Origin: Paraphysomonas bandaiensis
Taxonomy: Eukaryota; Protista; Chrysophyceae
Assembly (NCBI GenBank): GCA_965644295.1
Contig: CBFFRP010000406.1
Span: forward strand, 186,001-250,000
DNA length: 64,000 nucleotides
Direction: 5' to 3'
Positions 2,788 to 47,508 of this stretch are shown here, piece by piece. Position numbers and translations under genes: made by a program. The notes below the pieces were generated by a model, which saw only the letters and a program-made list of their open reading frames with translations, was not told the DNA's origin and ran no database searches. Each line of letters starts with the position of its first letter. Position 1 is the stretch's first letter.

Positions 2788-5700
2788 ATGCCAACACAAA
2801 AGCCGTCAAAGGATAGTGCTGGTGATGGCAGGGGAGTGGGTAGTTCCAGTCCGCCACGACAGCCCTTTACTGATGGAACTATTAAAATATTGTCCATATC
2901 ATGTCATGATATGAAGAATGTTGAAATGCAAGTTTCACAGTTATTTTCCCAAGACAAACCAGACCCATACTTGAAGCTTGCTATTGATACTTGGTATGAT
3001 GAAACCGAGGCGCTGATGGATGTGAATTCTAACTGTGGATGGGATGATTTGATATTTGCGATTCCTGTATCTTCTAATATCATAGAGGACGAATGCTTAC
3101 GAGTTGTAGCTATGGAATACAATAGCAGGAGTAGTCATAAGTATGTCAGCAAGGGTTCAGTGCCGCTAAATAGCTTGCTGGACACACTAGATAGCTCTCG
3201 GAGCACTGAGTTAATTGTTCGTCTGTCGGATGAAGAAGATGCATTTGCTGGTACAGTAGTAGTGCATGCCTTACTTGAAAGGAAGATCGACATCGCAAAA
3301 GGTGTGTCAGAAAAGCTGACCAAAGGAACTTTACAGGTGACAAGGGTGAGGGTGAGGAAGACCAAAAATGTGGACTCAAAAGAATGGAAACCACATGTAG
3401 TTTTGAAATACCAAAATCGTTCGATGTCAACTTCAGTCATCGACTGTGCAGCGGGGAACATAGCTTGTTGGAAGAATCTTTATTTCAAGGTAGATGATAT
3501 TACGACGGACATACTTGGAGCGGATTTGAATGTTGACATTTGGAATGGTAAATCATTGGTAGGTTCTGGGAGAACTTCATTGCTGGGGACCGGTTATACA
3601 TTGGGTGAAGAATTCGAATGTCGAATCAGTTTGACAGCTGATAATGGTGAAGTTGGGTATCAAATTGTTACTGATGTGATTCTGTTTGAGGGTAGAGATA
3701 TCACCGATGACGATTTGGACATGTCGAACATCTCGCTTCAACCGAGTTTTACTTCTGGGGTAGCACGTATTTCGAGTTTGAAGCTGTTCGACGTTGATAA
3801 TACAGAACAATCAAAGGTATTGTGTTGTGCTGTTTAATTATTATATTGTTAATACGTTGTTGTAGTTAAACGGCACTCTAACATATGGCGGGAATTCCAT
3901 ACCTATCAATTCTGCAGAAGTTACAGGGTCCATGGCTGTCTGGGACAACCTTAATGTGTTTTTCGATGTGAACAGACAAGTTATTGCATCGCAGCGACTT
4001 GAGCTGGCTCTTAGTAGTGCATCTAGTGGTGGTATTGTACCGGGCCTATTCGGAAAAAAAGAAGCGAAGCCATTTGGCAAAAATCAAAATGTATCCCTCG
4101 TCCGTGCAGTTCAACAATTTGGCGAAGAGGTTTTACTCAAGTTTCCTGTAATGGACTCTAAAGGGAAACTTGCTTGTCGTGCCTCGCTGATGTCGGAAGT
4201 TTGTGTTGGCAATGATGTGAGTGGCATCGAAGTTCCATCTGTATTTGATGGCGGCTGTCTTCGAGTTTTCAAAGTAGTTGTTTCTGGGGTGGAAAGTAAG
4301 AGCTCCGCCACTCTTCGCTTTGGAGAATCACAATGGACTTTGGATGAAAGTAATTCACTGGTTTGGGAACATTTAAATATAAGGTGTCAATTGACAAGAG
4401 ATGCCCTGCTGTCTGGTACTCTCGAACTTGAGCTAGGTACGATAGGTAAAGGCCGGGTTCCTATCATAAAATTGTGTCCTTCAATTGGAAATGGATGTCG
4501 CCTGCTACTTAATATATGCCGTAGAAATAATGATCCAGTAGGAACAGCTGTAGTCTTTGCCGCTGTTTTGCGGAATGAAGTGCCTAGAACTGTGCAACCA
4601 CCACAACTCGATAACTTTTTATGTGACGGGTTGTTAATTTCATGTGTGACCTCCAGGGGCTTCAAGGAGCAAGCCCAAGTTGAGTTCAAAATTGGCCCAG
4701 CAGTATCTGATAAATCGGTAACTGTCAGAAGGGACTCCGTAAGTGATAATACCAATATCATTATACCAATAAATTGTGATGAAATCATGTCAAACAAACT
4801 GCTTGATATTGTGGTTAGGGGAGAGGGTGGCTGGACTGGTGCGGGTAATACTTCTTTGCGGAGGTTAACAAGAAATGCAGGTACTGAGGACACACTATCT
4901 GTGGACGTATTTAAGAGCTCCAGTTGTGAACTCGTGGGGAGGATTGAAATTAGAGGTAAACTAAAAGAAGCACAATCTGAGCAAACACCATCTGTACCAG
5001 AGAAAGCAGAATCGGCAACCCAGAAAGATACATCGGTGCCAGAGAAAACAGAATCGGCACCACGGAAATCTAACTCGGTTCCAGAGAAGCAAAAATTGAC
5101 ACCAGAGAAAACTGAATCGGCAACACAGAAAGATAAATCAGTACCAGAGAAAACAGAATCGGCATCAGAGAAAGCTAAGCTGATACCTGTGAAAGAAAAA
5201 TTGGCAACAGAGAAAACTAAATCGGCATCACAAAAAGATAAATCTGAGCAGGATGAATCAGGAACTATGCACGAGAAGCGAGGTTTCTTGGACGGGTTTA
5301 CGAAAGGTATTCTTCGCATTTCACAGATTAAAGCCCGTGACTTAGAGAACTTGGAGTTGATGCCATGGGATAAGCAAGATCCATTTATCAAAGTTATTGC
5401 TGGGGAGGAATTTGAGGATGAAACTGCATACCAGAGCAATGCTGGGAAGGATGCTGATTGGAATGATCTGGATATGGTGATTCCAGTGGATGTAGAGTTT
5501 TTGAGATCAGGTAAAATAACCTTCGAGGCCTGGGAACATAATACAGCAAGAAGTCACTTGCAAATTGGATGTGGCCAGGTGTCTCTGGGGCATATATCGA
5601 AGATTGGCGAAGCGTTTACCGTTTCATGTCCTATTCTGAACGATAAAAAGAAGAAATCTGGGCGGATAGAGGCCGTGGTAACACTTGAGTACCCACCGAA

Positions 5701-8700
5701 TGAAGTATCGAATACAGAAAAAGCGCCAAAAACGAAGACTGACTCTGAAATGATAGATGCCTCGAATTCAGATCATGCGGCAAATAGGAAGAATGATTCC
5801 AAAGATAAAAACGTTTCTAATATAGGTGAAGCGCACAATACGAGGAATGTTTCCAACATAAAAGGTGTTTCGGAGGTTGGAAAGAAGAACGCGCAACTGC
5901 CCAAAGGGTTTACGAAAGGTATTCTTCGCATTTCACAGATTAAAGCCCGTGACTTAAAGAACTTGGAGTTGATGCCATGGGATAAGCAAGATCCATTTAT
6001 CAAAGTTATTGCTGGGGAGGAATTTGAGGATGAAACTGCATACCAGAGCAATGCTGGGAAGGATGCTGATTGGAATGATCTGGATATGGTGATTCCAGTG
6101 GATGTAGAGTTTTTGAGATCAGGTAAAATAACCTTCGAGGCCTGGGAACATAATACATCAAGGAGTCACTTGCAAATTGGATGTGGCCAGGTGTCTCTGG
6201 AGCATATATCGAAGATTGGCGAAGAGTTTACCGTTTCATGTCCTATTCTAAACGATAAAAAGAAGAAATCTGGGCGGATAGAGGCCGTGGTAACACTTGA
6301 GTACCCACCGAAAGATGAAACGCCAAGTACTAAGCATGAATCTAACATGAAAGGTGTTTCGAGTGTAGATAATACTTCGAGTGCGAAAACTTCTTCAAGT
6401 GCTGCAGAGGTGTCCACAGGGGCGGATGTTGGAAAGAATGGCGCGCAACTTCCCAAAGGGTTCACGAAAGGTATTCTTCGTATTTCACAGATTAAAGCCC
6501 GTGACTTAAAGAACTTGGAGTTAATGCCGTTGGATAAGCAAGATCCATTTATCAAAGTTATTGCTGGGGAGGAATTTGAGGATGAAACTGCATACCAGAG
6601 CAATGCTGGGAAGGATGCTGATTGGAATGATCTGGATATGGTGATTCCAGTGGATGTAGAGTTTTTGAGATCAGGTAAAATAACCTTCGAGGCCTGGGAA
6701 CATAATACATCAAGGAGTCACTTGCAAATTGGATGTGGCCAGGTGTCTCTGGGGCATATATCGAAGATTGGCGAAGCGTTTACCGTTTCATGTCCTATTC
6801 TAAACGATAAAAAGAAGAAATCTGGGCGGATAGAGGCCGTGGTAACACTTGAGTACCCACCGAAAGATGAAACGCCAAGTACTAAGCATGAATCTAACAT
6901 GAAAGGTGTTTCGAGTGTAGATAATACTTCGAGTGCGAAAACTTCTTCAAGTGCTGCAGAGGTGTCCACAGGGGCGGATGTTGGAAAGAATGGCGCGCAA
7001 CTTCCCAAAGGGTTCACGAAAGGTATTCTTCGTATTTCACAGATTAAAGCCCGTGACTTAAAGAACTTGGAGTTAATGCCGTTGGATAAGCAAGATCCAT
7101 TTATCAAAGTTATTGCTGGGGAGGAATTTGAGGATGAAACTGCATACCAGAGCAATGCTGGGAAGGATGCTGATTGGAATGATCTGGATATGGTGATTCC
7201 AGTGGATGTAGAGTTTTTGAGATCAGGTAAAATAACCTTCGAGGCCTGGGAACATAATACATCAAGGAGTCACTTGCAAATTGGATGTGGCCAGGTGTCT
7301 CTGGGGCATATATCGAAGATTGGCGAAGCGTTTACCGTTTCATGTCCTATTCTGAACGATAAAAAGAAGAAATCTGGGCGGATAGAGGCCGTGGTAACAC
7401 TTGAGTACCCACCGAAAGAAGATTCTACTGATGCGGAGGTTGGAAAGAATGGCGCGCAACTTCCCAACGGGTTTACGAAAGGTATTCTTCGTATTTCACA
7501 GCTTAAAGCCCGTGACTTAAAGAACTTGGAGTTGATGCCATTGGATAAGCAAGATCCATTTATCAAAGTTATTGCTGGGGAAGAATTTGAGGATGAAACT
7601 GCATACCAGAGCAATGCTGGGAAGGATGCTGATTGGAATGATCTGGATATGGTGATTCCAGTGGATGTAGAGTTTTTGAGATCAGGTAAAATAACCTTCG
7701 AGGCCTGGGAACATAATACATCAAGGAGTCACTTGCAAATTGGATGTGGCCAGGTGTCTCTGGGGCATATATCGAAGATTGGCGAAGCGTTTACCGTTTC
7801 ATGTCCTATTCTAAACGATAAAAAGAAGAAATCTGGGCGGATAGAGGCCGTGGTAACACTTGAGTACCCACCGAAAGAAGATTCTACTGATGCGGAGGTT
7901 GGAAAGAATGGCGCGCAACTTCCCAAAGGGTTCACGAAAGGTATTCTTCGCATTTCACAGATTAAAGCCCGTGACTTAAAGAACTTGGAGTTGATGCCAT
8001 TGGATAAACAAGATCCATTTATCAAAGTTATTGCTGGGGAAGAATTTGAGGATGAAACTGCATACCAGAGCAATGCTGGGAAGGATGCTGATTGGAATGA
8101 TCTGGATATGGTGATTCCAGTGGATGTAGAGTTTTTGAGATCAGGTAAAATAACCTTCGAGGCCTGGGAACATAATACATCAAGGAGTCACTTGCAAATT
8201 GGATGTGGCCAGGTGTCTCTGGGGCATATATCGAAGATTGGCGAGGAGTTTACCGTTTCATGTCCTATTCTAAACGATAAAAAGAAGAAATCTGGGCGGA
8301 TAGAGGCCGTGGTAACACTTGAGTACCCACCGAAAGAAGATTCTACTGATGCGGAGGTTGGAAAGAATGGCGCGCGACTTCCCAACGGGTTTACGAAAGG
8401 TATTCTTCGTATTTCACAGATTAAAGCCCGTGACTTAAAGAACTTGGAGTTGATGCCATTGGATAAGCAAGATCCATTTATCAAAGTTATTGCTGGCTTA
8501 GTATTTGAAGGCGAAACAAAGTACCAGAGCAATGCTGGGAAGGATGCTGATTGGAATGATCTGGATATGGTGATTCCAGTGGATGTAGAGTTTTTGAGAT
8601 CAGGTAAAATAACCTTCGAGGCCTGGGAACATAATACAGCAAGAAGTCACTTGCAAATTGGATGTGGCCAGGTGTCTCTGGGGCATATATCGAAGATTGG

Positions 8701-11700
8701 CGAGGAGTTTACCGTTTCATGTCCTATTCTAAACGATAAAAAGAAGAAATCTGGGCGGATAGAGGCCGTGGTAACACTTGAGTACCCACCGAAAGAAGTG
8801 TCTAGTGAGTTTGATGGTGGACTACTTCTAATTAATCGAATAACGGCTTTTGGTGTGTCAAAGTCAGTATCTCCTCGCGTCAAGCTTACTCTTGGCACCT
8901 GGGAAGTGAAAACGGATGCACCTAATATACAGGGAGAGAAAATGGTATGGGATAGCTTGAACTTCCGGCGTGAAATATCTGTTGATGATTTAAAAACAAG
9001 CAAAGTGCTTGTAGCTCTCTGTGAAGAAGGTGGAAATGGAAACGAAGAAATAGTAGGATCGGGAAAGGTAAAAGTTATTAGTGCTGGGGCGAAATTGAAC
9101 GATGAAACTGTGCTCTCGGTAGACATGGCTTCTGCAAACGGGAAGGCTGTAGGGCGCATTGAGTTATGTACAATGGTGAGAGACGGGTACGAGCCAGATG
9201 AAGACACGCTGCAGATTTCAAATGGATTTGAATTTGGAACGTTGTATTTCAAGCAGATAAAAAGCTTTGATCTGAAAAATACTGAGTTATTTGGGAAGCA
9301 AGATCCGTTTGTTGAGTTAAAAGTTGACGAGTGGAAGGGTAAGACGTATACAAAGCAGGAAGGTGGTGGGGATGTGGTTTGGAATTTCTTGGACTTACAC
9401 TGTGACGTAACTGCTGATACCCTACGCTCCAAAGATTTGGAAATCACTGTTTGGGACGAAAACAAAACTCGAAAAAATGCCTTGATTGGCAATGCATACT
9501 GTCGACTTATTAAGCCTGGTGCATTTGTTGGAGAAGAAGTTAAACTTGCTGTATCTTTAGCTGATGAGAAGGGAAAGTATTCTGGGAGATTAGAGATATA
9601 TGCTACTTTGGTTGATGAAGAGAAGGAGCAAGAAAGGAATATTCCAGAATCCTTTCGAATGGGTGAACTAAGAATAATGCGAATAAGTGCATATTCATTG
9701 AAGAAGACTGAATTATTCGGGGAGTCGGACCGCTTTGTTGAGTTGTCTCTTGAAGACACGGACCTTCATGAGCGGACAACAGTTTTGAAGAGTGCAGGAT
9801 CTGATCCGATATGGGACCATTTGGATTTTTACACCACAGTTAATGCAAGTATAGCCAAAGTAGGAAAAATTGAATTGAAGGTATGGGATCAAGGCCATAT
9901 ATACGGGAAAACCTACATAGGAGGGGGCTCTGTTGGGCTGCGCCGCTGTGCGGCATCTTTAGGAGATGATGTTGAATTAAGAGCGAAGTTATTTGACGAC
10001 GACGATCGAGAAGCTGGTCGGATTGTTTTACTAGCAAGTATGAAAGAGGTACCTCCCAGTGCTTCAGATAAGGAGATAAGTCTTCCGGAATCGTTTACGT
10101 CGGGTATTGTACATTTCAACAGTATTTCGGCGAAAGGGCTTAAAAACAAAGAAATAATTGGAAAGCAGGTATATGTTTAACAATAATCACACTATATTGT
10201 CAACACTTGTTTAGGACCCCTACGTGAAATTGGAGCTCGCATCTTGGACAGATAGGACAACAACCCTACAAAATTGCGGCTCGGCACCTGCGTGGCCATG
10301 CACAAAGCACTTATTCTGCGAAGTTGACCGACAAATCTTATCAGATTACAAATTGAGAATTACTGTGTATGATGAGAACGAAAATAGAGCCCATAGTGTT
10401 CTTGGCACAGGCAGTGTGTCTTTACGCCCTTTGGCGCCAAAAATCAACAGAGAAGTACATTTGCAAGTGAACCTGAGTGACAAAGGTGTTGCAAGTGGAT
10501 ATGTCATCATTGCTGCCACTCTTCGGGAAGCATTGGAGACGGAAATTAGTGACACTATTCCTGAATCTGCTGTGAGATTCGCTGTTGGCTCACTCACTGT
10601 TAAAAGCGTAGCTGCGAAAGGTATAATTGGCGGTGATAACTCTATATTCGATAGTAAACAGGTGTGAAATATATTTTTCGCTGTCTTTAATAATCTTGCT
10701 TTAAGGATCTCTACGTTGTATTGGAGTTAAATGAGTGGCAGTGGAGCACACCTTATCAGAATAATTCTGGGCCAAGTGCCTCATGGGACAATTTGGAAGG
10801 TGTTGTCACTGAAATCGATGGAGATGTTGCTAAATATCAGAGACTTGCTGTATCTGTTTGGGATAAAAATACTTGTGATGATGAATTAATTGGGAAAGGA
10901 GATGTAAGCTTGAGAAAAGCAGGTGCCATGGTTGATAAAGATGTCATGATGATGGTACCAATCACCAACAAGAACAGTGAGCGCTGCGGCGTCGTTGCAC
11001 TGGAATTACAAATTAATGAAAGCACCCTGAATAAAGTATACGAGGAAAATGACGGATCTTCGAAGAATGGAATTTTAGAGATTAATGAAATTCGAATTGA
11101 AAATTTGAAAAAGTCAGGTGTGTAATAATTTATAGCGCGTAAGTTATGATATAATGATGTTCGCTAAACACAGGATGGTTTGGTAAACAAGATGTGCTTG
11201 TAGCACTATCAATAGGAACTAACTGGACATATGAAACTGATATCAACACTACAAGTGGTACCAATGCGATATGGAACTGTGATATATCCCACGAAGTTGC
11301 TGTTTCTCAACTGAACAGGGATGCTATAGCTGTTGACGTGAGGGACAAAAGTAAAAGAAGTGTTGGTCGTGGATCCTTGACTGCACGTCCATTGCTGAGT
11401 AAAATGGACCAGTGGACAGTTATTCGGGGAGATCTATTCGTTGATAAGGAGCAATGTGGTCATATAGTGATGAACTGCCGCTTCTGCATTGGAGATTCTT
11501 CCGGGCAAGGAACAAGAATGGAGCGTGTTCGAGAGGATAAGGCTGATGTGGAAAATATCTTAAAGAAAAAACTCCAAGAGGTCTTCTTTCCGCGATGACA
11601 TTCTATTTTTAATATGCTTGTAGGAATTGGAATCTGAAAGGAGAAAAATGCTTGAGATGTTAACCAGTCATACCTCTACAGTAGGGAACATCGAAACAAG

Positions 11701-13927
11701 CTTAAAGAAACAGCTGCATGAGGTTTCTTCTTTTCGACTGTTATATTCGTTTTTTGTAACTAATTCTCAGGAATTGGAACTTGAAAGGAAGAAAATGGTA
11801 GACATGCTTTCGAATCACAATAGAAAACTAGACGAGACTTTGGGGAGAATATCTCGTAGGTTACCTGATAGCCAAGGGCTAGAGCAACATGACCTGGCGA
11901 TTACTGAGTTAAACAATGTTAAGTTACCAGCGAATATTTGTGAGTGGAGAGCGTCACATGTACAGGCATGGATATCACTGAGAATGGATCTACCTCAGTA
12001 TTTACAACAGTTTCAAGATGCATCTATAGATGGTTTAGTTCTTCTTCGCCATGTGAATGACGAAATTTTGAGTGATACTCTTGGTGTAACGACGACTCTT
12101 CATCGAATGAAAATACTTGAAGGCATAGAGAGTTTAAAAGCGAAGCAGGTTGAGTACGAAAATCGGACAAAGGCGAAGAATAAGACTGATGTGCGACCAT
12201 CGCCCAAAACTCCCCCTAAAAAGAGAAAGGTGGTGAAGAAGAAAAAAAAGAATGTTGCTCAGCATACGTGGTTCGGTGACGTGCGTGAACAGAACGATTT
12301 AGAGCGCGTCAAACTTGAGAGAATAATGCGGGAGAAAAGAGCGGAGGAGCTCAAAGCGAAGAAGAAAACTAAATCTCGAAGTGAAGTGTGGAAGTTTGAA
12401 TACACAGGAGGTGCGAAACCGGTAACTGATGATGAGGAATTATATGGCCCAACCCAATCGTCGAAGACAGGCACTGCGCTATACGAGAGAACAATTTCGA
12501 ATTTGTTACAAACAGTAACAATTTCTTCGAACACCCAAGCCACAATGGGAAAGTATATCGGAGCAATTCGGCAAATTCCCCTAGACAGTGTACTTGATGA
12601 GGTCATTACAATAACGAAGGGTGCTATGTACGATGTATCTGATAGATTGATCGAAATTGAGAGGATTAAGTCCAACAAAGAAGCTATCCTGGATAGTGAT
12701 CTCGAAGGGCTCTCTACCCTGAATTCCGCTAATCCAGTATCTGGGTCTCTTGGCAATTTCGACGGTCATGATGATGATGACCCTCCGCCAACTTATGAAG
12801 AAAGTGATAGCACCGAAGTATTGCCTCAGCACCTGAACCAAACTGAGCACAGCAAGCTCGACCGCGCGGCTCTGATATTTGAATCATTTATAAATCTTCA
12901 AAATAATGATGCTAGGTGGTTGGGAAGCAATGGAAAGTTAACCAGACTTAAGTTTCATGGTGGATTTGAAAGTATATTAAGATTAAAAATATCATGGCCC
13001 CAATTCGATGCGTTGTGGAATAAACTAGATTTCCATCGAACTGGAGAACTGGATATTGAGGAGTTTCGAGAAGTTTTTGGCGATTTTTCTGAGTTTGAGT
13101 CGAAACCATCTGTCAAAAGACTTGGAGGTTCTGCCGATTCTGCTCTTGGAAACCTGGCAGATATAATGTATGATATGTGTAATTCGTTGAGAAGAGCAGG
13201 GTTCACAGTCCTGGAGATGTTTTCGAGTTTTGATAGGAATGGATCCGGAGAAGTTTCTATCCATGAATTTTGCAGTATGGTTCGCGTAATTCTTGGAAGA
13301 CATGTGGATAAGAAACAAATTTTTAGGTCTTTTGCACTGATGGATGTTGATAGCAGCAGATCAATTTCATGCAATGAAATACTGACATTGGTTTATAACG
13401 TGTGGAAGTTTCAAATGAAAGATCTTGCTGCGAAGTTATCACCCTTGGATGAGGTCATGGATGCGCAGTTGATATCGAAAATACTCAAAGAAAGAGATGA
13501 TATAAAAGCTGCTGTCAAGAAAAATTTCCCTCGAGAATGGCGAGATTTACTCGAACGAACGAAGGAATCGTACAACAAGGGACCCTTTTATCATATTTTG
13601 CAAAAAATGAACATTACCTCTACGTCATCTACTCTGGATTGTCAAAATAACACAACTTGTACACAACAATTAGACCAATCTCTGCCTACCACTCCTTCAC
13701 GTCCAAGAAAAGGCCACCCCAGCAAATCGGGTCGAAATGAATTACTACGGTACAAGGTGAATTCTTCAAGGACACACATTCCCACCAGACAAGGTGCAGT
13801 ACTAACAGTCCCTAGTGTGAAATCTTTTGGACAAGGAAATCTTACTTCTGAAGGTGCTGCGTTACGTCGTCTGCAAGACACGGAACCATCTGATGCCAAG
13901 GTCTTTACCTTAACTTCTAATTTGTAG
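2788..13927 (+). CDS. Giant (~3,600 aa) multi-C2-domain protein with coiled coil, SAM domain and EF-hands; about 7 exons
   Basis: ORFs 2749-3837, 3932-10180, 10224-10667, 10721-11125, 11194-11598 and 11627-13927 are joined by short GT-AG introns (frame checked for 3817-3865 and 10169-10214). About 18 C2-like units (DPY/DPF...VWDEN...IG). SAM-like EWRASHVQAWI...FQDASIDGLVLL...LGV...HRMKIL. EF loops DFHRTGELDIEE, DRNGSGEVSIHE and DVDSSRSISCNE. Confidence 0.85.
4985..5250 (+). repeat. Degenerate coding minisatellite (SVPEKTESATQKDK-like units) in linker of C2 protein
   Basis: Recurrent ccagagaaaac(a/t)gaatcggca units with about 21/42-nt periodicity. Confidence 0.75.
5294..8795 (+). repeat. Seven near-identical tandem C2-domain repeats within one exon
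   Basis: Unit gggtt(t/c)acgaaaggtattcttcg...gagtacccaccg starts at about 5294, 5906, 6458, 7010, 7469, 7928 and 8387 (spacings 612, 552, 552, 459, 459, 459). Confidence 0.95.
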
Positions 13928-23785: not shown

Positions 23786-26700
23786 CTACTTGCGTCTTCT
23801 TTTATCCCTTGGTCCCTCATTAATCACTTCAGTGGAACTCTTAACTTTCTCTCCAAGATTTCTCTTTCTCTGCTCCATATATGATAAACCAACCAATGAC
23901 TTTGTATAAATATCTGCTGCTTGTTGCGATGTATGCACATGCACTAACTTAATCGTATTGAACTGATTGGGATCCACGTGCTCTCTCACCATGTGATACT
24001 TAATCTCAATGTGCTTCGACTTCTTGTGAAACACTGGGTTTTCGGCCAAATCCTGGGCACTCTGACTGTCGATGAAGAATGGTGTGGGTTTGATGAGCCT
24101 CAACTTAATCTCACCCGTCACCCCCCGAACCCATAGCACTTCTTGGAGACCCGAGTAAATACACTGATACTCAGACTGCATGCTTGACGTTGCCACTGTC
24201 GTCTGCAGTTTGGACTGCCAGACTATAGGCCCTCCCGCTGCAAACCCAACGTACCCCGACGTGGACTTCCTGGAGAGCTGGTCTCCCGCCCAATCCGCGT
24301 CAGTAAACATATGGAAGTCGAACCGTCTACTCCCATATTGAATCCCTTTGTCAATAGAACCACGAATATATTGCCATACGTGTGTTAATAGCTTGCATAC
24401 TTCAATATTCACCTTATTACTGAACCGAGACAGTACTCCCACTGCATAGGCAATATCCGGCCTCGTGTTCATCGAGAGATATAGTAATGCACCTATCAGC
24501 GGCCGATATGGGAAGTTATCTACTATAAGCTGTTCCTCCTCGGTATGCTCATGCCGTGCCCCTTTTGCCACTAAATCCATTGCTTCCGCCGGTAGAGGAC
24601 TCTTCCGTACCTTTCGCGGTGACCCAAGATACTTTTCAAACTTTTCTAAGATCTTAGCCGCATATACTGATTGGTCAAGACGAATATACTCTGGCGTTCT
24701 TGTGACTCGAACATTCAGAAAATGTTCCATCTCGCCCATATCCTTCATATCAAACCGGGCACACAGTTGAGCTTTAATATCCTTCACTATGTTGACATCA
24801 CGACCTAACACTAGGATATCATCCACATATATCGTTAATAATATCAATTCATCGCCCTTATACTGATAATACAAACACGGGTCTAATACACATGGTTTAA
24901 AATGCATAGATCGTATGAATTTATCCAATGTTTTCCACCACGACCGCGGGGAACTCCGAAGCCCGTATAACGACTTCTTCAACTTAAAGCAGTACCCCTC
25001 AGGCAGCTGAAAGTCCGGAGTTGCCTTCATATATACATCCCCCTCTATATCTGCATATAGAAATGCGTTAGACACATCCAGTTGATGAATTACCATGTTC
25101 ATCACGAAAGCTATGGCGATTAACAGTCGCACTGTTACCCCCTTAACAACGGGTGCGAAATGGTTCGCCCAACCACTCGACTGCTGTCCACAACCGATTG
25201 CTACAAGACGAGCCTTATATCGGCGGACCTCTCCCTCCTTATCGTACTTCTTTCCATAGACGTACTTGGAGTGCAGTGGGACGACTCCGTCCGGTATACG
25301 AGTCACCTCCATGGTATCTCGCTTCGCCAAACCCTCTCGCTCTACACGGCGAGCTCGTCTCCACTCCCTGTGCTCGGCACTCTCCAAGGACTCACGATGT
25401 GTCTGAGGCACTGTCGACTCTTCCGCTGACATCCACACTGAGTCTGCCTCCTGTAAAAGGTCACTCACATCACTCTCATCACTCAAATGATGGATTTGTC
25501 CTAACACCGACACATTCGTTACCGTCCTTGGAGTTCTTGCGCGTTTGCCGTGCGGATGATTCTCGGCAGGGGTCCCTTCCCCCGAAGGTAATGCTGAGTC
25601 AGCCTGGGGCTGCACCTGCCCACTTTCCGACTGCTGTGGCACCACTCCGCTGATACCGCCGTCACGGTTGTCAGTAACTCTGGCCCTAACCACCCTCTGC
25701 GCAAGATCCTCTGTCATCTTCTTGATGTCAGCAATATGAATAGGAGTTTTATCCTCCACTTGAACCTGGTTACCAGTAACCAACGACCGGTATCCCACAA
25801 TAAGTCCCTTCCTTATCACCACTCTGTTAGTCTTGTATAGCAGACCACCATCCTCATGGTGCTTTCCGATAAGATACTCAAACTCACCCGGTTGACGAGC
25901 CTCGGGATCTATAGCCACTTGAGCCTCCTCCAGCTCTCTATAATAATCCTGAGACCTCTCAGGTACCGATTCATCAAATAATACATGTACAGAGTGTACT
26001 ACGGTGTCCCCCACTAGCACCTTGTATCCTTTTCGATCAGCTGGATACCCTATGAAATAACCTGTCATTGCTTTGTCCTCCCAGTCCTTCCTCCTGTCGG
26101 CCTTGGGTGTTAGCACATATGCTTTGCACCCCCATTTCCGTAGCCACGATAGGCTGGGAACGCTCCCCCTGGGACACACTCATATGGAGACATCCATCCT
26201 TGCCACGTCCGAGTTGGCATTCGTCGCACAATGTAACATGCAGTTTGATAAGCATCAAACCAGAACGACTTTGGAAGTCCAGATGCCGTCAACATCGTCA
26301 GTGTCATCTCCCCAATTGTTCGGAATTTCCTCTCAGACACCGCGTTGAGCTCTGGCGTGTCTCGTGTTGTATGTGACACCCGAGTCCCATATCGCTGCAA
26401 CAGATACTCTCTTATCTGCTGACTAATAAGTTCGGATCCTCCATCGGCATGATACTCCACTATACGGTTCCACCCCTCGTACTTCACTAAGTGGACCTCG
26501 CACAAGTGTCGTAGACATTTGAACACCTCCTCTCCGCTTCGAGTCCTCAATCCATATTCCCATATCATCTTTGTTGCTAAGTCCGTAAATAGGAGCACGT
26601 ACTTATACCCTTGTCTGGATTCACAATTGAGATAGACGGAGATGTCCGCTGTTACTCTTTCCAGGAACCTGACTGCGCTTAGCTCTTCGTTGTCCCGTGA

Positions 26701-28383
26701 TTTGAACGAATGCCTGGTTATCTTCGCCTTGGCACACCATTTACACAGGGGTTTCTTGCAACTCTTCTCCTTTGCCTTCGAAAGGTGATGTCGTTGTAGT
26801 CCTGATCCTCTGAATAACATGTGTCGGTGAGCTTCTATTAACTTCGATTTCGAGACATGTCCAGTACGCTCATGTAAGCGATCCAACGCATCTTGTCCTG
26901 TATTATCCGACAAATTTACCTCCTCCATCTGATTGCACATAGACACATTTGGCAGATTTAACACCTCCATCAAGTCCACATACGGCATTCCTCCATGCTC
27001 ATCGTACTCTCCAGTCAACACCTCGTTTCCAGAGTCCAATTCCACGATTTTAGGCTTTCGAAGCAGTTGTAATCCGTATCCCATTGATCTCAGCATTCCT
27101 CCTGACACAATGTTCTTCACCGCTTCTTCACTAACTCTGATGTCTCTCCATTCCCCGAATGTACCAGTTCCCTGTGTCTCCAATTGAGAACCCTTTCTAG
27201 TTAGTTGGATTGCCCCAAACTCAGGAGTAAATGACTCCAGTGCAATTTTATCCTTTACTATAAACAGTCTTTTACTTGCACAACTGTCCAGATATACACG
27301 AGGTTCTTCCGACGTATCCACCGATAGCAAAACCTCTTCTCCAAACATATTCGCTTCATCATCCGACGACTCTCCGTCGTTGACGTATTTCTTCCATTCT
27401 GTCTCGAATTTCCTGTTCGATTTTCGAGGATTCTCATTATCCGGGTTTTTTATGTTCTTCCGTTTTTTCGACTTGCACTGTCGGGCTTTATGACTAAAAT
27501 CTCCACAGATATGACAACCAGTATAATCCTTTGACCCTGGCTGCTGCACACTCTTCGAAGCCTTTTCCTTTGTCTTCCCTTTTCTTTTGAACTTATCCAT
27601 TTTTCTTTGTCGTTCCTTAGCATAACAATTCGCTGCTACATGTCCCTTCTTCCGACAAAATGAACAAACCACTGGCTCCTTCGACGCCGTAAAATTGATC
27701 TCTTCAGATTTGTCTCCCTTTAGTTTCTTCAGCTGCGTCATAGCCTCGTCATACTCTTCACAAGCCTCTTTCACCGAATCAAATGTAGTTGTTGCTTTAG
27801 GCATCATCGCTACCGACATCCATAAATCATGTAATTCCTCTATCTGCAGCGCTGCTTTTATCTTTGCTAATTTACTTGCCTCTGTCTGCGGTTGTCCCAA
27901 TTTTATGAGCTTCTGGATTATACCGTTCAGTCGATCTACCCCAACAGACACCTTTTCCCCCGGCCTTATTTTGAACGAATGGTATTCTGCCGTAGTCTTC
28001 TCCAATACAGTCCCAATCTCGCCTCTGAACCTATCAACCAGTGTCTGAAGGAGCTCACTGGATAACACCTCCTTAGCAGGATCATCAGCAGGTAAAATTG
28101 CCTTCCCCTCCAAATATTGATTGGCTACCTCCAACACATCAGGGTCATGCTCGCAAGCCTCCCAAATAGTACTAACACAGGTATCATTACGCTCTCTCCA
28201 TGACTCTAAATTCCTTCCTCCGGCTGGCGGGTCCTCCAAGCCAAGATGGTTTCGGTTTTTCTTCATTAGATGCATCTTGATTTTTCTCGCTGAATAGTCT
28301 GCTTGGTTCTTGTCAAACCGTAGCTTCTTGTCATCTTCCCCATCCCTACAACTACCATCCGCTACCATAACAGAAGTTGACAT
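23786..28383 (-). CDS. Copia gag-pol polyprotein, split by a 1-nt frameshift at about 26165
   Basis: ORFs 26110-28383 and 23786-26179 overlap. The joined reading SPYECVP.GSVPSLSWLRKWGCKAY restores the conserved post-integrase-core motif. Confidence 0.9.
28350..28367 (-). promoter_or_regulatory. Primer-binding site, probably tRNA-iMet
   Basis: Minus-strand TGGTAGCGGATGGTAGTT lies directly after the LTR. It parses as TGGT (anti-ACCA) + 7-nt acceptor (AGC start) + 5-nt T stem + TT. Confidence 0.8.
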
Positions 28384-42630: not shown

Positions 42631-43146
42631 ATTAAACGATGTGCTGTAAATCTCTATGAATGGAGCGCTCCTTCCTCTACGATCATTCCTTAAGAATACA
42701 CACAGTGACTATCCGCTCGTCCACAGCTATTGACTTACTACAGTAAGAAGGAAGTTTTTCCGATGAAGTCACTGGTATGAGAAGCACTGTACTGGAACTG
42801 AACTTCTTCTCCTACCGGCTACTGGTACTCCTATCATGAAGTGGAAGTACAAGAGAAGTGCGTGATCGAGTATTGGAGAAGCGTGATGTTTATTCAGTCA
42901 ACAGTAACCTATCCAATCCGTGTATGACGCTCCACTACACTGTATTCTGTGTGCTACCTCTACCCGTATGATATGACACGGACGTAGAGTATAGTGCAGC
43001 AGCACCGTGAGTGTCTGCCTATGATGAATATATGCATGTGTGCTTTGTTGCTATCTTCTCACTGGACAGAGCACAACATCAGCACCCGCTGCTCTATCAA
43101 GCAAGTGTACCAATCATAAGCCGTAGGCATCATCCGTGGCTGTACC

Positions 43147-46100
43147 ATGGACGCCAGCTTGATATCAGATACTCCATGGATTGAATATCATGACGAGAGC
43201 AGCGGCAGGCCCTACTATTACAACAAAGACACCGCACAGACTCAGTTTGATATGCCGGAAGCTTACGCCACTTGGAAGAATAATGAGATCGACAAGTTCC
43301 TCAGCACAACCTACTGGAGAAGGCGGAAAGATGAAAACAGGAATGCGTATTTCTATTACAATAAGCAGACAAGAACGAGTCAGTGGGATGTGCCTCAGGA
43401 GCAGAAAGAGTTTGAAGCGTTCTTGCTTGAAGTTAATGAAAAAAGATTAACTGGAAGTGAAGATGGTGATGACGCGCAGAGTGAAGGTGGATGGGGTGAA
43501 ACAGATGAGATGCAAGAAATCTCTGGGTTTGATGAACCCGGGACTCCATTGAGCGGTGGAACTCCCACTCATGAATCTCCTATGAGCGCCGAGTATTCCT
43601 CTGACTTTGGTAGCTCTAAAGAACGAAAAGAAGAGGAAGTGGAGGAGTATTCGACGATGGGAAGGGACTTTCTGAATACTCCGGAGGTGCGTGACGATGA
43701 TACTAACAAAGCTGTACCTTCGGGTCAGAGCGAGGTTGACGAGAAAGCGGAGCTTGAGAAAGAGCTCTCGTTGCTAGAGGAGAAACTCTCTGCGCGTGAT
43801 GCGATAATGGAACCCGGTGTAAACCGCACAATTAACAGATACTTGACCCTTGCTCCTGAAGCTACTCCTCTCATGGTAGTGCAAAAGCTGAGTCAAGGGT
43901 ACACGGGCTACGCGCAGTTGACTCACATTATATGTAGCTGGATAGAGCTCGCTTCTGACGGAGTTGCAGAGTTTGACGCTGATGAATTCGTGGCGCAGGA
44001 AGTTGCTGCCTTAGTTAAGCGGAAATTTCACAAGGTATGTCTGGGTGTCCTATTTACATTTAACCTACCTCATGTTGCTTGTATGCTAGGATCTTGCGGA
44101 TCGTCTTATCGACGAGCAAGCAGCTGTGCCTCTCTGGTTACATGACATGATGCACAAACCTACTTGGCGGCGGCTACTCATTGAACTTTTTGACGAGAGC
44201 TCAAACAAGGGCAGTGCCCTTCTTGGCTATTGTATACGTTATCTTTCTGGGCAGGGATTTCACAGGGAGATTGCGCATGTGATTCGGGAGGCTGAGTACT
44301 TTCACGTCTTCAATGACCTTTTCAAAGATACGATCTGCCGGGTAAGTAGATAGGATATTAAGTGTGTGTTCTTATGCATTGTTCGCAGTTCGGCCAGGCG
44401 CTTTCAGGTGCAGCATGTGATGATCGAGCTGAGGATTTGGTTGGCGATCTAAAACGTATGTGCTGCAGCTCGGAGTACATGTTTATATATGCACATGCTC
44501 TTCTCAAAGCTCTGGAAGATACTTTGCTTGCAGCAGAGGAAGAAAATTGTGGAAAGAGGAAGCGTGTACATAGCGATGTGGAGGAAGCTGAGGAAGGAGA
44601 AACTACTTCACCCGTAATATCCCAGTGGGGAAAGAAGATGAGGAGACTGCGACAGGAGCTCGACCAGGCAGTCATTTGGGACACTGGTGACACTTCCTCT
44701 CCAAGTGCTTGGTGTGACCCCAACCCTCTTACCCATACGAGATCTTTTGCGATGCGCCTTACCGATATTACCGGAAAATCTGCCGCTCAGAATATTGGTT
44801 CTGGATATGATAGGGTTATCGGCGTGCTCGATAACGATACCATATCGGAGGTCGTAGTCAAAGATCTCTATCGTGCATGCTTCGGGTGTGTGGGAATGGC
44901 AGTTATGCTTTATCATCTGAACTATAAGCAGGGTGGACGTTGATTTTCCAGACGATAAGTGCATTGTGGCGCAAGCAGAAATCACCAAGTTCATTGAGTT
45001 CTGCAACGGTGATGGCGCCGCAGTTATGGAGTTAATGAGCCACCCACAGGTTTGTTAATGACCTTGATGTGAGCATAGATATAGTCAGTGACCATTTGGA
45101 ACACAGGTGCTGCGCGTATTTGTTCGCTCTCTTTTCCATACCTCCAAGTCACACAGGTTGATGTACTCCAAAAGACGGGTCTGTGATCTGCTGGCTCTTG
45201 TTTGTAAATACAAGGGTCAGAATGGTGGGAGCATTGGTGAACATGAAGTTTTCACTCGGGAAGTTTCGAAGCTCTCAGGCAGTTTGACTCAGGCGGTTGA
45301 TATGTGCCTTGAGATGAGTGGGCTGGTTAGAGGATGACATTGCTTGCAATATAACTTTTAATACCGTTTTCATAGGGCAGTGGATTGACGTCGTCCGAAA
45401 AGTTCGATGATATGTTTGTTTTGCTCAAAGTAAGTGTGTGGTACAAAAAGCATGAGGATTTAGTTTGTATTCGCAGGAGCCCATCATTTCAGCCGCCGTA
45501 CTTTTCTGGATTAGATGCAGTGTCACTGATATCCAGTTTATTCATAAGTACGGAGTACTAGTATGCGTGCTTTATTGTATTGATCGTCTACGCAGGAGTC
45601 AGCAAAGTGCAGTGTATTCTGTGATTTTGCAGATTCTGGTACACACAATTGATCACTATCCCTTACAAAGGCAGGAATGCTTTAATATACTCAAGGTTTA
45701 TCAACTACTGCCGTTTTGTTTAGAAATTAACTATACCCAAGACTGCATATAGGTCCGTTTCAGAATTCGTGTCTGATTTGGACGACGGTCACAAGGTAAT
45801 TTAAAACTGATTCTCGCTCTCGCCATAATGTTTATCGCTCTGGCGGCAGGACTCCGGCATTGAAATTGACATCATGGATATAATTGTGTATCTTATCGGA
45901 ACAGGTGCTGTTGTGAAGTTGATGCTATCAGAGTATGACGCACACTTGCAGGGTTTGTTAGGGAGCCAATGGATTTTATCGCCAGCTATGTTACAGATGA
46001 TAATATGCATAAATTCGATACGGTATTTGCAACTGTAGTTGGTGTGCATTTTTTACTGTGTCTATCAGGCCTTAATTCGCCACGTATTTGTGAAATTGCT

Positions 46101-46377
46101 CACATCGATATCTCCGCCCTTTTCCAAGGAATTTTCTACGAAATTAATTGATATATTTCTTCTGCGGAGGTAAATACTACGTTTCTGTTATATCACTATA
46201 CATGACGCTTTTTTCTACTACAGCTCACGCAAAGCTGTTGAAAGCCAGCACTTTCCTATTGTTGGAGTTAAAGCACTATATAACTTTCGCTCTTCAATTG
46301 GTGCAGATACCTTAGAAGGTGTGAAATTGAAGGCATTCAATGCGTTAGTAGACAGTGTAGGAACACACTACAGGTAG
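43147..46377 (+). CDS. Tandem-WW-domain + NELF-C/D (TH1)-like protein, multi-exon
   Basis: WW1 PWIEYHDESSGRPYYYNKDTAQTQFDMP and WW2 YWRRRKDENRNAYFYYNKQTRTSQWDVP. TH1 motifs LSARDAIMEP, VVQKLSQGYTGYAQ, PLWLHDMMHKPTWRRL, RYLSGQGFHREI, KRMCCSSEYMFIYAHALL. Confidence 0.8.
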
Positions 46378-47508
46378 CAGCAGCAATATGACGAAGATGT
46401 ATTTGTAGTTTACACTTTTTAATTAATATAATCACTTACTTTATGTGGTACGAAACCAATGCGCACTTGCTTGTGCTGGTTGTAATTTGTTTAGGTGGTT
46501 CTACTGACATTGTTTTAGTATTCTACACCAAAGGACACAGGTCTTACTAGCAGCAAAATTCCAGTATTCCCTCCATCGCATACACAAGGAACATAGTGCT
46601 GTGAGCTGCAGATAATACTTCTTAGAACTGTTGCCACTAATAACTTATAAATCCATGATTACATTTAAATTCCTTCAGATATGAGATATGATAACTACGC
46701 ATCCTAGTCTCATACATTCTATTCATATTGTATATTGTGAATATTGAATATATATACGAGTGTTCTGTATTCATATTTCTTATGTGGAGACCATATTTAC
46801 CTTCAGTCAGCAGGTGTCAGGTATATATTATTATATATCATCATCTGCTTGCTCACTGCATTTGCTTTAATTGATAGAACGAAAGTAGTTGCACTTGGTT
46901 CTTGTCGTGACACACAAGCAGCTTTCGTAGCGCAAAATAGTAGGATATCAGAGTTAAGCACTAGTTAGTTAAATTGTTTTGCTACATTAGTTCTGACTCT
47001 TTCATGCATATTGCTCATAATCAGGCATTCACTACTGAGACCACATATATTTAAGTATGTACGATATTGTCAACTTGGGTTAGGGTTAGGTTTAAAATCA
47101 AGAGACCTGAGAATAAAGTGCCCCAGATTGCAACGATAAACATAGTACTAAATGTAACGATTAAATGTAACGCTACACTATATAAATTGCAAAAATACAT
47201 AAGTACCTATAACCGTCAACAATATTTTGTAGCTTTCCTACGTAATTTTTCTCCAATATACCTTCTATACCTTCTATAGGAAATATCATCGTTTTTGCCG
47301 TATTGGATAGAGGGGGCGCTATATTGTGACATATCGTGGTGCTGTTCCATCAATAAATAGTACATCATCATGGGATTTTTGTCCTCAGTACTATTACAAT
47401 ATATTAGCATCAATGATCAACTATGAGATATGAAGTACATATTTCTAAAAACATCCACTATACCAATAAATTTGAGTACTTATAATTAGCGTAGTGAGGG
47501 GTAAAGGT

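Follow-up and report, generated by a model that had tools for sequence, protein, structure and literature searches.

In animals, NELF-A provides the Pol II contact of the NELF complex and NELF-E provides the RNA contact. The human NELF-C/D subunit (e.g. 6gml_W, 9j0n_W, 5l3x_B, 8jj6) carries no WW domains. Two WW domains connected by a short helical linker are found in PRPF40A (FBP11) and yeast Prp40 (8pxw, 2l5f, 1o6w), and the best-known ligands of Prp40-type WW domains are PPxY and PPLP. Another nuclear protein with WW domains, TCERG1 (CA150), is linked to splicing and to elongation by Pol II.

The closest described case was reported by Chivu et al. (bioRxiv 10.1101/2023.02.19.529146). According to the main text of this preprint, NELF-B and NELF-C/D occur widely among eukaryotes and constitute an ancestral core. 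Its Supplementary Methods recorded N-terminal WW domains on many stramenopile NELF-C/D proteins and suggested 'functional changes in this group' for the stramenopiles with this layout. A C-terminal bromodomain was reported on all stramenopile NELF-B proteins examined. In the Pfam table of the preprint, the rows with WW domains included the sagenistan Mucochytrium quahogii and the diatom Entomoneis paludosa; because both are represented in those rows, the WW layout spans deep stramenopile branches. The FinalNELFCDcandidates FASTA of the same preprint already lists the protein analyzed here, as Paraphysomonas sp. CaronLab P009422 (MMETSP1103, LENGTH_876), and the organism named in this entry is Paraphysomonas, a chrysophyte. 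No main-text treatment of a WW fusion with NELF-C/D was found in a full-text literature search.

In supplement file 93 of Chivu et al., a NELF-B candidate of Telonema sp. was observed with at least three N-terminal WW domains. WW domains thus occur in a second lineage, attached to the other core subunit of NELF.

Therefore, a possible novelty of the combination of WW and TH1 domains, on which the first-pass annotation of this locus had not decided, did not survive: the layout is a known stramenopile-wide feature, already widespread and described, and the protein is a catalogued one rather than a discovery. The architecture and the protein are the same as in Chivu et al., with no difference in kind. 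However, the preprint devotes one sentence to the layout and gives no anatomy, whereas the present analysis adds a genomic model of 13 exons, assigns the WW pair to the Prp40 type, describes its helical linker and the acidic leash behind it, and names candidate ligands.

Gene structure, transcript and NELF-C/D body

The window is the whole stretch of 64,000 nucleotides of Paraphysomonas bandaiensis DNA that was analyzed, and all positions below refer to it unless another locus is named. An open reading frame was present on the + strand at 43147–44145, of which the exon part, 43147–44034 (888 bases), stops at a GT donor (GTATGT). The public transcript L006 (2776 nt, complete ORF), a contig from JGI sample 3300017004, was aligned to the window at 100% identity and resolved into 13 exons. 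The 12 introns were all of the GT-AG class, with lengths of 46–57 nt each.

The transcript begins with a 5' UTR on the + strand at 43071–43146 (bases 1–76 of L006, 100% identity), which contains an in-frame TAA upstream of the ATG. The coding part of exon 1 (43147–44034, +; residues 1–296), supported by the ORF, the Pfam matches and the transcript, holds the first WW domain, a helix, the second WW domain, another helix, the acidic spacer and the start of the TH1 region. Exon 2 (44090–44341, +) was supported by both the transcript and Pfam. The transcript further defined, on the same strand, exon 3 (44389–44885), exon 4 (44932–45049), exon 5 (45107–45325), exon 6 (45376–45429), exon 7 (45477–45547), exon 8 (45596–45695), exon 9 (45742–45795), exon 10 (45850–45904), exon 11 (45952–46022) and exon 12 (46069–46169). 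Exon 13 (46224–46443, +) is coding up to the stop codon TAG at 46375–46377, in agreement with the gene end at 46377 that had been claimed from the sequence, and continues as the 3' UTR to the end of the transcript. The coding exons sum to 2634 nt, corresponding to 877 codons and the stop codon. The TH1 gene was single-copy in the 62.5-Mb assembly of 669 contigs.

When exon 1 was searched against 1.84 billion representative proteins, the public protein P0001 (877 aa) was retrieved, with residues 1–296 being 100% identical. In JGI and MMETSP, this protein is labelled 'Transcript_20904 ... type:complete'. The whole-protein analyses were run on P0001 and transcript L006.

Both parts of the fusion were detected by Pfam in the same frame of 43147–44034. 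In the translation of exon 1, two stretches matched the WW profile (E 5e-17, 62.1 bits; cut-off 26.9), and a further region matched positions 21–120 of the TH1 profile (E 4.1e-14, 52.6 bits; cut-off 24). The WW-TH1 fusion is therefore independent of splicing prediction, because the two parts share one open frame, as the first-pass annotation had stated. The TH1 profile continued at positions 136–205 in exon 2 (E 4.3e-9), so that exons 1 and 2 each passed alone. The transcript check proposed along with that annotation gave the same picture, since L006 spans the WW and TH1 parts at 100% identity with a complete ORF. A downstream start, in which the transcript would not include the WW region, was ruled out by the Pfam matches within exon 1 and by L006, which starts at 43071 and has the in-frame TAA in its 5' UTR. 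The idea that the fusion is an artefact, either of mis-assembly or of two adjacent genes read as one, has a negligible probability: the WW and TH1 parts lie in a single exon, an independent transcript assembly covers both of them with a complete ORF, and other samples yielded over 30 different clusters with the same layout. The gene is real and transcribed.

The identity of the body was examined with profiles, sequences and structures. P0001 matched TH1 (PF04858) with an E-value of 1.8e-56 and 192.5 bits, compared to the gathering cut-off of 24. Among all PDB sequences, its best matches were human NELF-C/D chains (E 2e-30), in which residues 192–452 aligned with human residues 34–275 and residues 559–839 with human residues 306–575. 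The NELF-B-binding fragment in the NELF-BCE structure (8jj6_D) matched P0001 at 3e-15, and the chain from the NELF-AC crystal (5l3x_B) at 2e-6. The AlphaFold2 model, built from an alignment of 26 sequences, had a mean pLDDT of 75.3 and was all-alpha across residues 195–877. In a Foldseek search of this model against the PDB, ranks 1–11 were all NELF-C/D chains (E 7e-12 to 2e-4). The NELF-C/D identity read from the letters was thus borne out by the Pfam TH1 match and by the best PDB and Foldseek matches.

The TH1 body begins within exon 1 at 43732–44034 (+), where TH1 profile positions 21–120 match and the alignment starts at human residue 34. The body (residues about 195–877) matches human NELF-C/D in its NELF-B-binding N-terminal part and its NELF-A-binding C-terminal part. 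The NELF-B-binding part is the best conserved part of the body. The resemblance to the human subunit extends over both halves by sequence (E 2e-30) and to the fold of the predicted model (E 7e-12, TM about 0.5 normalised to the target). However, the identity between the two proteins is only about 17%, and the WW domains are missing from the human subunit, where the alignment begins at residue 34 compared to residue 192 in Paraphysomonas. These results establish a single-copy orthologue of NELF-C/D in Paraphysomonas (Chrysophyceae, stramenopile), with 877 aa encoded by 13 exons.

Elsewhere in the window, two long ORFs of a copia-type retrotransposon were observed at 23786–28383 (−), one set of domains being an integrase core and the other an RVT_2 reverse transcriptase with a retroviral SH3-like domain. 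Another locus (L004:8247–8955) contained a related fragment of RVT_2. At 3932–13924 (+) of the window, long ORFs encode many C2 domains and, after these, SAM and EF-hand domains.

Tandem WW module, acidic spacer and their conservation

In P0001, the WW profile (PF00397) matched two stretches with an E-value of 6.9e-16 and 58.4 bits, compared to the cut-off of 26.9. WW1 (residues 10–37; 43174–43257, +) was supported by Pfam, a local WW profile and the model strands. Its signature residues are W11, F34 and P37 (...TQFDMP), so the second Trp is replaced by Phe. WW2 (residues 56–83; 43312–43395, +), supported by the same kinds of evidence, has the canonical W...W..P signature with W57, W80 and P83 and a conserved W-R-R start. 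In the AlphaFold2 model, each domain was a three-stranded antiparallel sheet with pLDDT above 90, with strands at 11–15, 22–26 and 31–33 in WW1 and at 57–62, 67–72 and 77–79 in WW2.

The region between the two domains (43258–43311, +) was characterized by the alignment and the model as a linker with a helix at residues 38–52, in which W43 and L52 are nearly invariant. Another conserved helix with an FExFL motif lies behind WW2 (residues 84–103; 43396–43455, +). Residues 1–103, comprising WW1, helix 38–52, WW2 and helix 84–103, were all modelled with pLDDT above 90. The following acidic spacer (residues 104–195; 43456–43731, +) is predicted to be disordered from its composition and its pLDDT of about 30. 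Its net charge is −19 over residues 104–195, and it contains four Ser/Thr-Pro sites. The description in the first-pass annotation, namely two WW domains joined by a short linker, a Phe in place of the second Trp of the first domain and an acidic spacer, agreed with the two Pfam stretches, the modelled helical linker, the ...TQFDMP sequence next to a canonical WW2 and the measured charge. Taken from the model, the N-terminal module is predicted to be a rigid WW-helix-WW-helix unit of the Prp40/PRPF40A type (residues 1–103), connected to the body by a disordered acidic linker of ~90 residues.

Compared to PDB sequences, the 103-residue module aligned as one unit with the tandem WW domains of PRPF40A (8pxw, E 1.2e-9; also 2l5f) and with yeast Prp40 (1o6w, E 6.6e-6). 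The next matches were TCERG1 (7abg_A4, 6e-5), a Set2-type methyltransferase and WBP4. In the Foldseek search of the whole model, the PRPF40A tandem WW structure (8pxw) appeared at rank 13. The designation 'Prp40/TCERG1 type' was therefore appropriate for the WW pair, whose best solved matches are PRPF40A, Prp40 and TCERG1. No FF domains were found on P0001 in the Pfam scan. The WW module is Prp40-like, but the protein is not a member of the Prp40/PRPF40A or TCERG1 families, because no FF domains follow the WW pair.

The likeness to PRPF40A and Prp40 includes the two WW domains with a short helical linker that align as a unit, the Y-Y-Y-N strand motif common to both and the helix behind WW2. 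Unlike these proteins, the Paraphysomonas protein has no FF domains, has Phe instead of the second Trp in WW1 and has a linker that is a few residues longer, with its own conserved W43 and L52. WW2 also gave a sub-threshold match to a TCERG1 WW model and the match to 7abg_A4 (6e-5); however, the score of 15.8 was well below the TCERG1 family cut-off of 70 bits, and the FF domains of TCERG1 have no counterpart. The proline groove of WW1 may be weak, because its second Trp is missing.

Among the 151 proteins collected, 38 hold the TH1 region. One to three N-terminal WW domains were present in 34 of these 38 TH1-positive proteins, mostly two at about residues 10–37 and 56–84; the set was gathered with a WW-containing query, so this proportion demonstrates that the layout recurs but does not measure its frequency. 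WW and TH1 occur together in at least 34 other protein clusters. Across 26 aligned relatives, W11, P37, W43, L52, W57, W80 and P83 were at least 90% conserved, and the W-R-R start of WW2 was kept. The sequence of the spacer was variable, with its acidity kept among close relatives. The second aromatic position of WW1 was Y or F in the five closest relatives (43–50% identity) and W in more distant ones. The Phe in WW1 is thus a clade trait and not decay, because the closest relatives share Y or F at a position where distant ones have W. With regard to lineage specificity, the earlier proposal held in part: the fusion is transcribed, conserved and a stramenopile feature, but it is not peculiar to Paraphysomonas.

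NELF partners, candidate ligands and proposed function

Partners of NELF-C/D were searched for in the genome. Six-frame profile searches for COBRA1 (PF06209) at E-values up to 10 were blank. The best NELF-B candidate was located on another contig (G000:C200, about 173100–176600, +; L005:5104–8575). Its N-terminal exon aligned weakly with residues 91–139 of human NELF-B (E 0.09) and is followed by three bromodomain exons. The bromodomain loci scanned for NELF-B were L003, L004, L005, L007, L008, L010 and L011, with L009 (the C346 copy) left out. L003 was rejected as NELF-B because it encodes three bromodomains together with FYRN/FYRC, Tudor and WSD domains, and L007, L008, L010 and L011 were rejected as WD40, p300-like and PHD proteins. 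Nothing was found in the scan of L004. No match to the L005 transcript was obtained from metagenome data, among which records of the Paraphysomonas genome may be hidden. The final NELF-A, -B and -E candidate files of Chivu et al. (10.1101/2023.02.19.529146) contained no Paraphysomonas entries; human NELF, unlike the set listed there for Paraphysomonas, has both NELF-A and NELF-E.

The rejected locus L003 contained a single open frame of 1876 aa (L003:2087–7714; G000:C28, −), encoding a large chromatin-reader protein. The same long microsatellite, read as HTYI repeats in translation, was observed at L005:4749–5100 and L015:2–289. It thus directly precedes both the NELF-B candidate and Spt5, although these genes are unrelated.

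Two candidate ligands of the WW pair were read from the genome. Rpb1, located by the profile PF04990 (G000:C275, about 60.4–60.8 kb, +; L013:1000–1417), ends in 15 regular YSPTSPA heptads, which have Ala at position 7, with no canonical YSPTSPS among them. The tail of Spt5 (G000:C78, +; L015:1444–3531) consists of Thr-Pro repeats. No PPxY or PPLP was found in the Pol II CTD and Spt5 tail sequences read. After the Spt5 Thr-Pro repeats, a cluster of GW/WG repeats was observed, which recalls the Argonaute-hook motifs of plant SPT5L. In P0001 and its relatives, PPxY and PPLP motifs were absent outside the WW pair, and P0001 contained no poly-Pro motif.

We propose that the WW pair would act as a docking or capture module on a flexible acidic leash of ~90 residues. 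Its ligand would be a segment with prolines in a nuclear protein of transcription or RNA processing, most likely the Pol II CTD, which is rich in Ser-Pro, or the Spt5 tail with its Thr-Pro repeats. Core NELF (B and C/D) would thereby be retained on Pol II during early elongation, and WW docking would compensate for the apparent lack of NELF-A and NELF-E, for which the lineage has no listed candidate. The first-pass annotation had suggested that NELF is tethered to the CTD, Spt5 or splicing factors, which is plausible. In its specific form, with the CTD or the Spt5 tail as the favored target and compensation for NELF-A and NELF-E, we infer it with a confidence slightly above even. The candidate ligands are encoded in the genome; however, neither the CTD nor the Spt5 tail, as read, contains PPxY or PPLP, and WW1 does not have its second Trp.

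Alternatively, the WW pair could act as in Prp40/PRPF40A and bind PPxY or PPLP of early splicing factors (SF1/BBP, U1 components), so that NELF-C/D would connect Pol II, while paused or in early elongation, with co-transcriptional splicing without itself serving as a CTD tether. All of the solved WW modules that the pair matches best (PRPF40A, Prp40, TCERG1 and WBP4) are linked to the spliceosome, and the genome is intron-rich, with the 12 introns of 46–57 nt in the NELF-C/D gene alone. Still, the missing FF domains place the protein outside the Prp40 and TCERG1 families, and we regard this explanation as rather unlikely, though the strongest of the alternatives.

A role in assembly is less probable again. 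In that case, the WW pair would find its proline-rich partner within the complex, on the bromodomain-bearing NELF-B or a different subunit, and so stabilise a stramenopile-specific NELF. Such a role would fit the gain of reader-type modules by both core subunits in stramenopiles (WW on C/D, bromodomain on B) and the WW domains that Telonema has on NELF-B instead. It fits poorly with the Paraphysomonas NELF-C/D, which has no PPxY, PPLP or poly-Pro motif, and none of these was seen in the ORFs at the locus of the NELF-B candidate; moreover, a disordered leash of 90 residues is better suited to capturing a partner from outside the complex than to a fixed place in its assembly. We consider it similarly improbable that the TH1 protein acts outside a NELF-like pausing complex and is directed by its WW pair to an unrelated proline-rich partner. 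The failure of the COBRA1 model to recover NELF-B and the preprint files without Paraphysomonas NELF-A, -B or -E speak for this reading, but the most conserved part of the protein corresponds to the NELF-B binder in the human complex (8jj6_D, E 3e-15), and a candidate NELF-B locus is present.

An extension of the docking reading to the whole complex is offered as speculation that is doubtful at present. Stramenopile NELF might be a two-subunit 'reader' pausing complex, in which the Prp40-type WW pair on C/D and the bromodomains on B would take over the jobs of NELF-A and NELF-E. The core would in this way be anchored to the phosphorylated CTD or Spt5 tail as well as to acetylated nucleosomes at promoters.

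Because the architecture had already been described, this analysis contributes a verified gene model and a more precise hypothesis. The WW pair on C/D and the bromodomains on B offer concrete handles in tractable stramenopiles such as diatoms, Nannochloropsis and oomycetes. The locus bears on the origin of promoter-proximal pausing and on the role of the ancient core of NELF-B and NELF-C/D outside animals. If the two-subunit 'reader' NELF were true, it would represent an independent route to regulated pausing outside animals.
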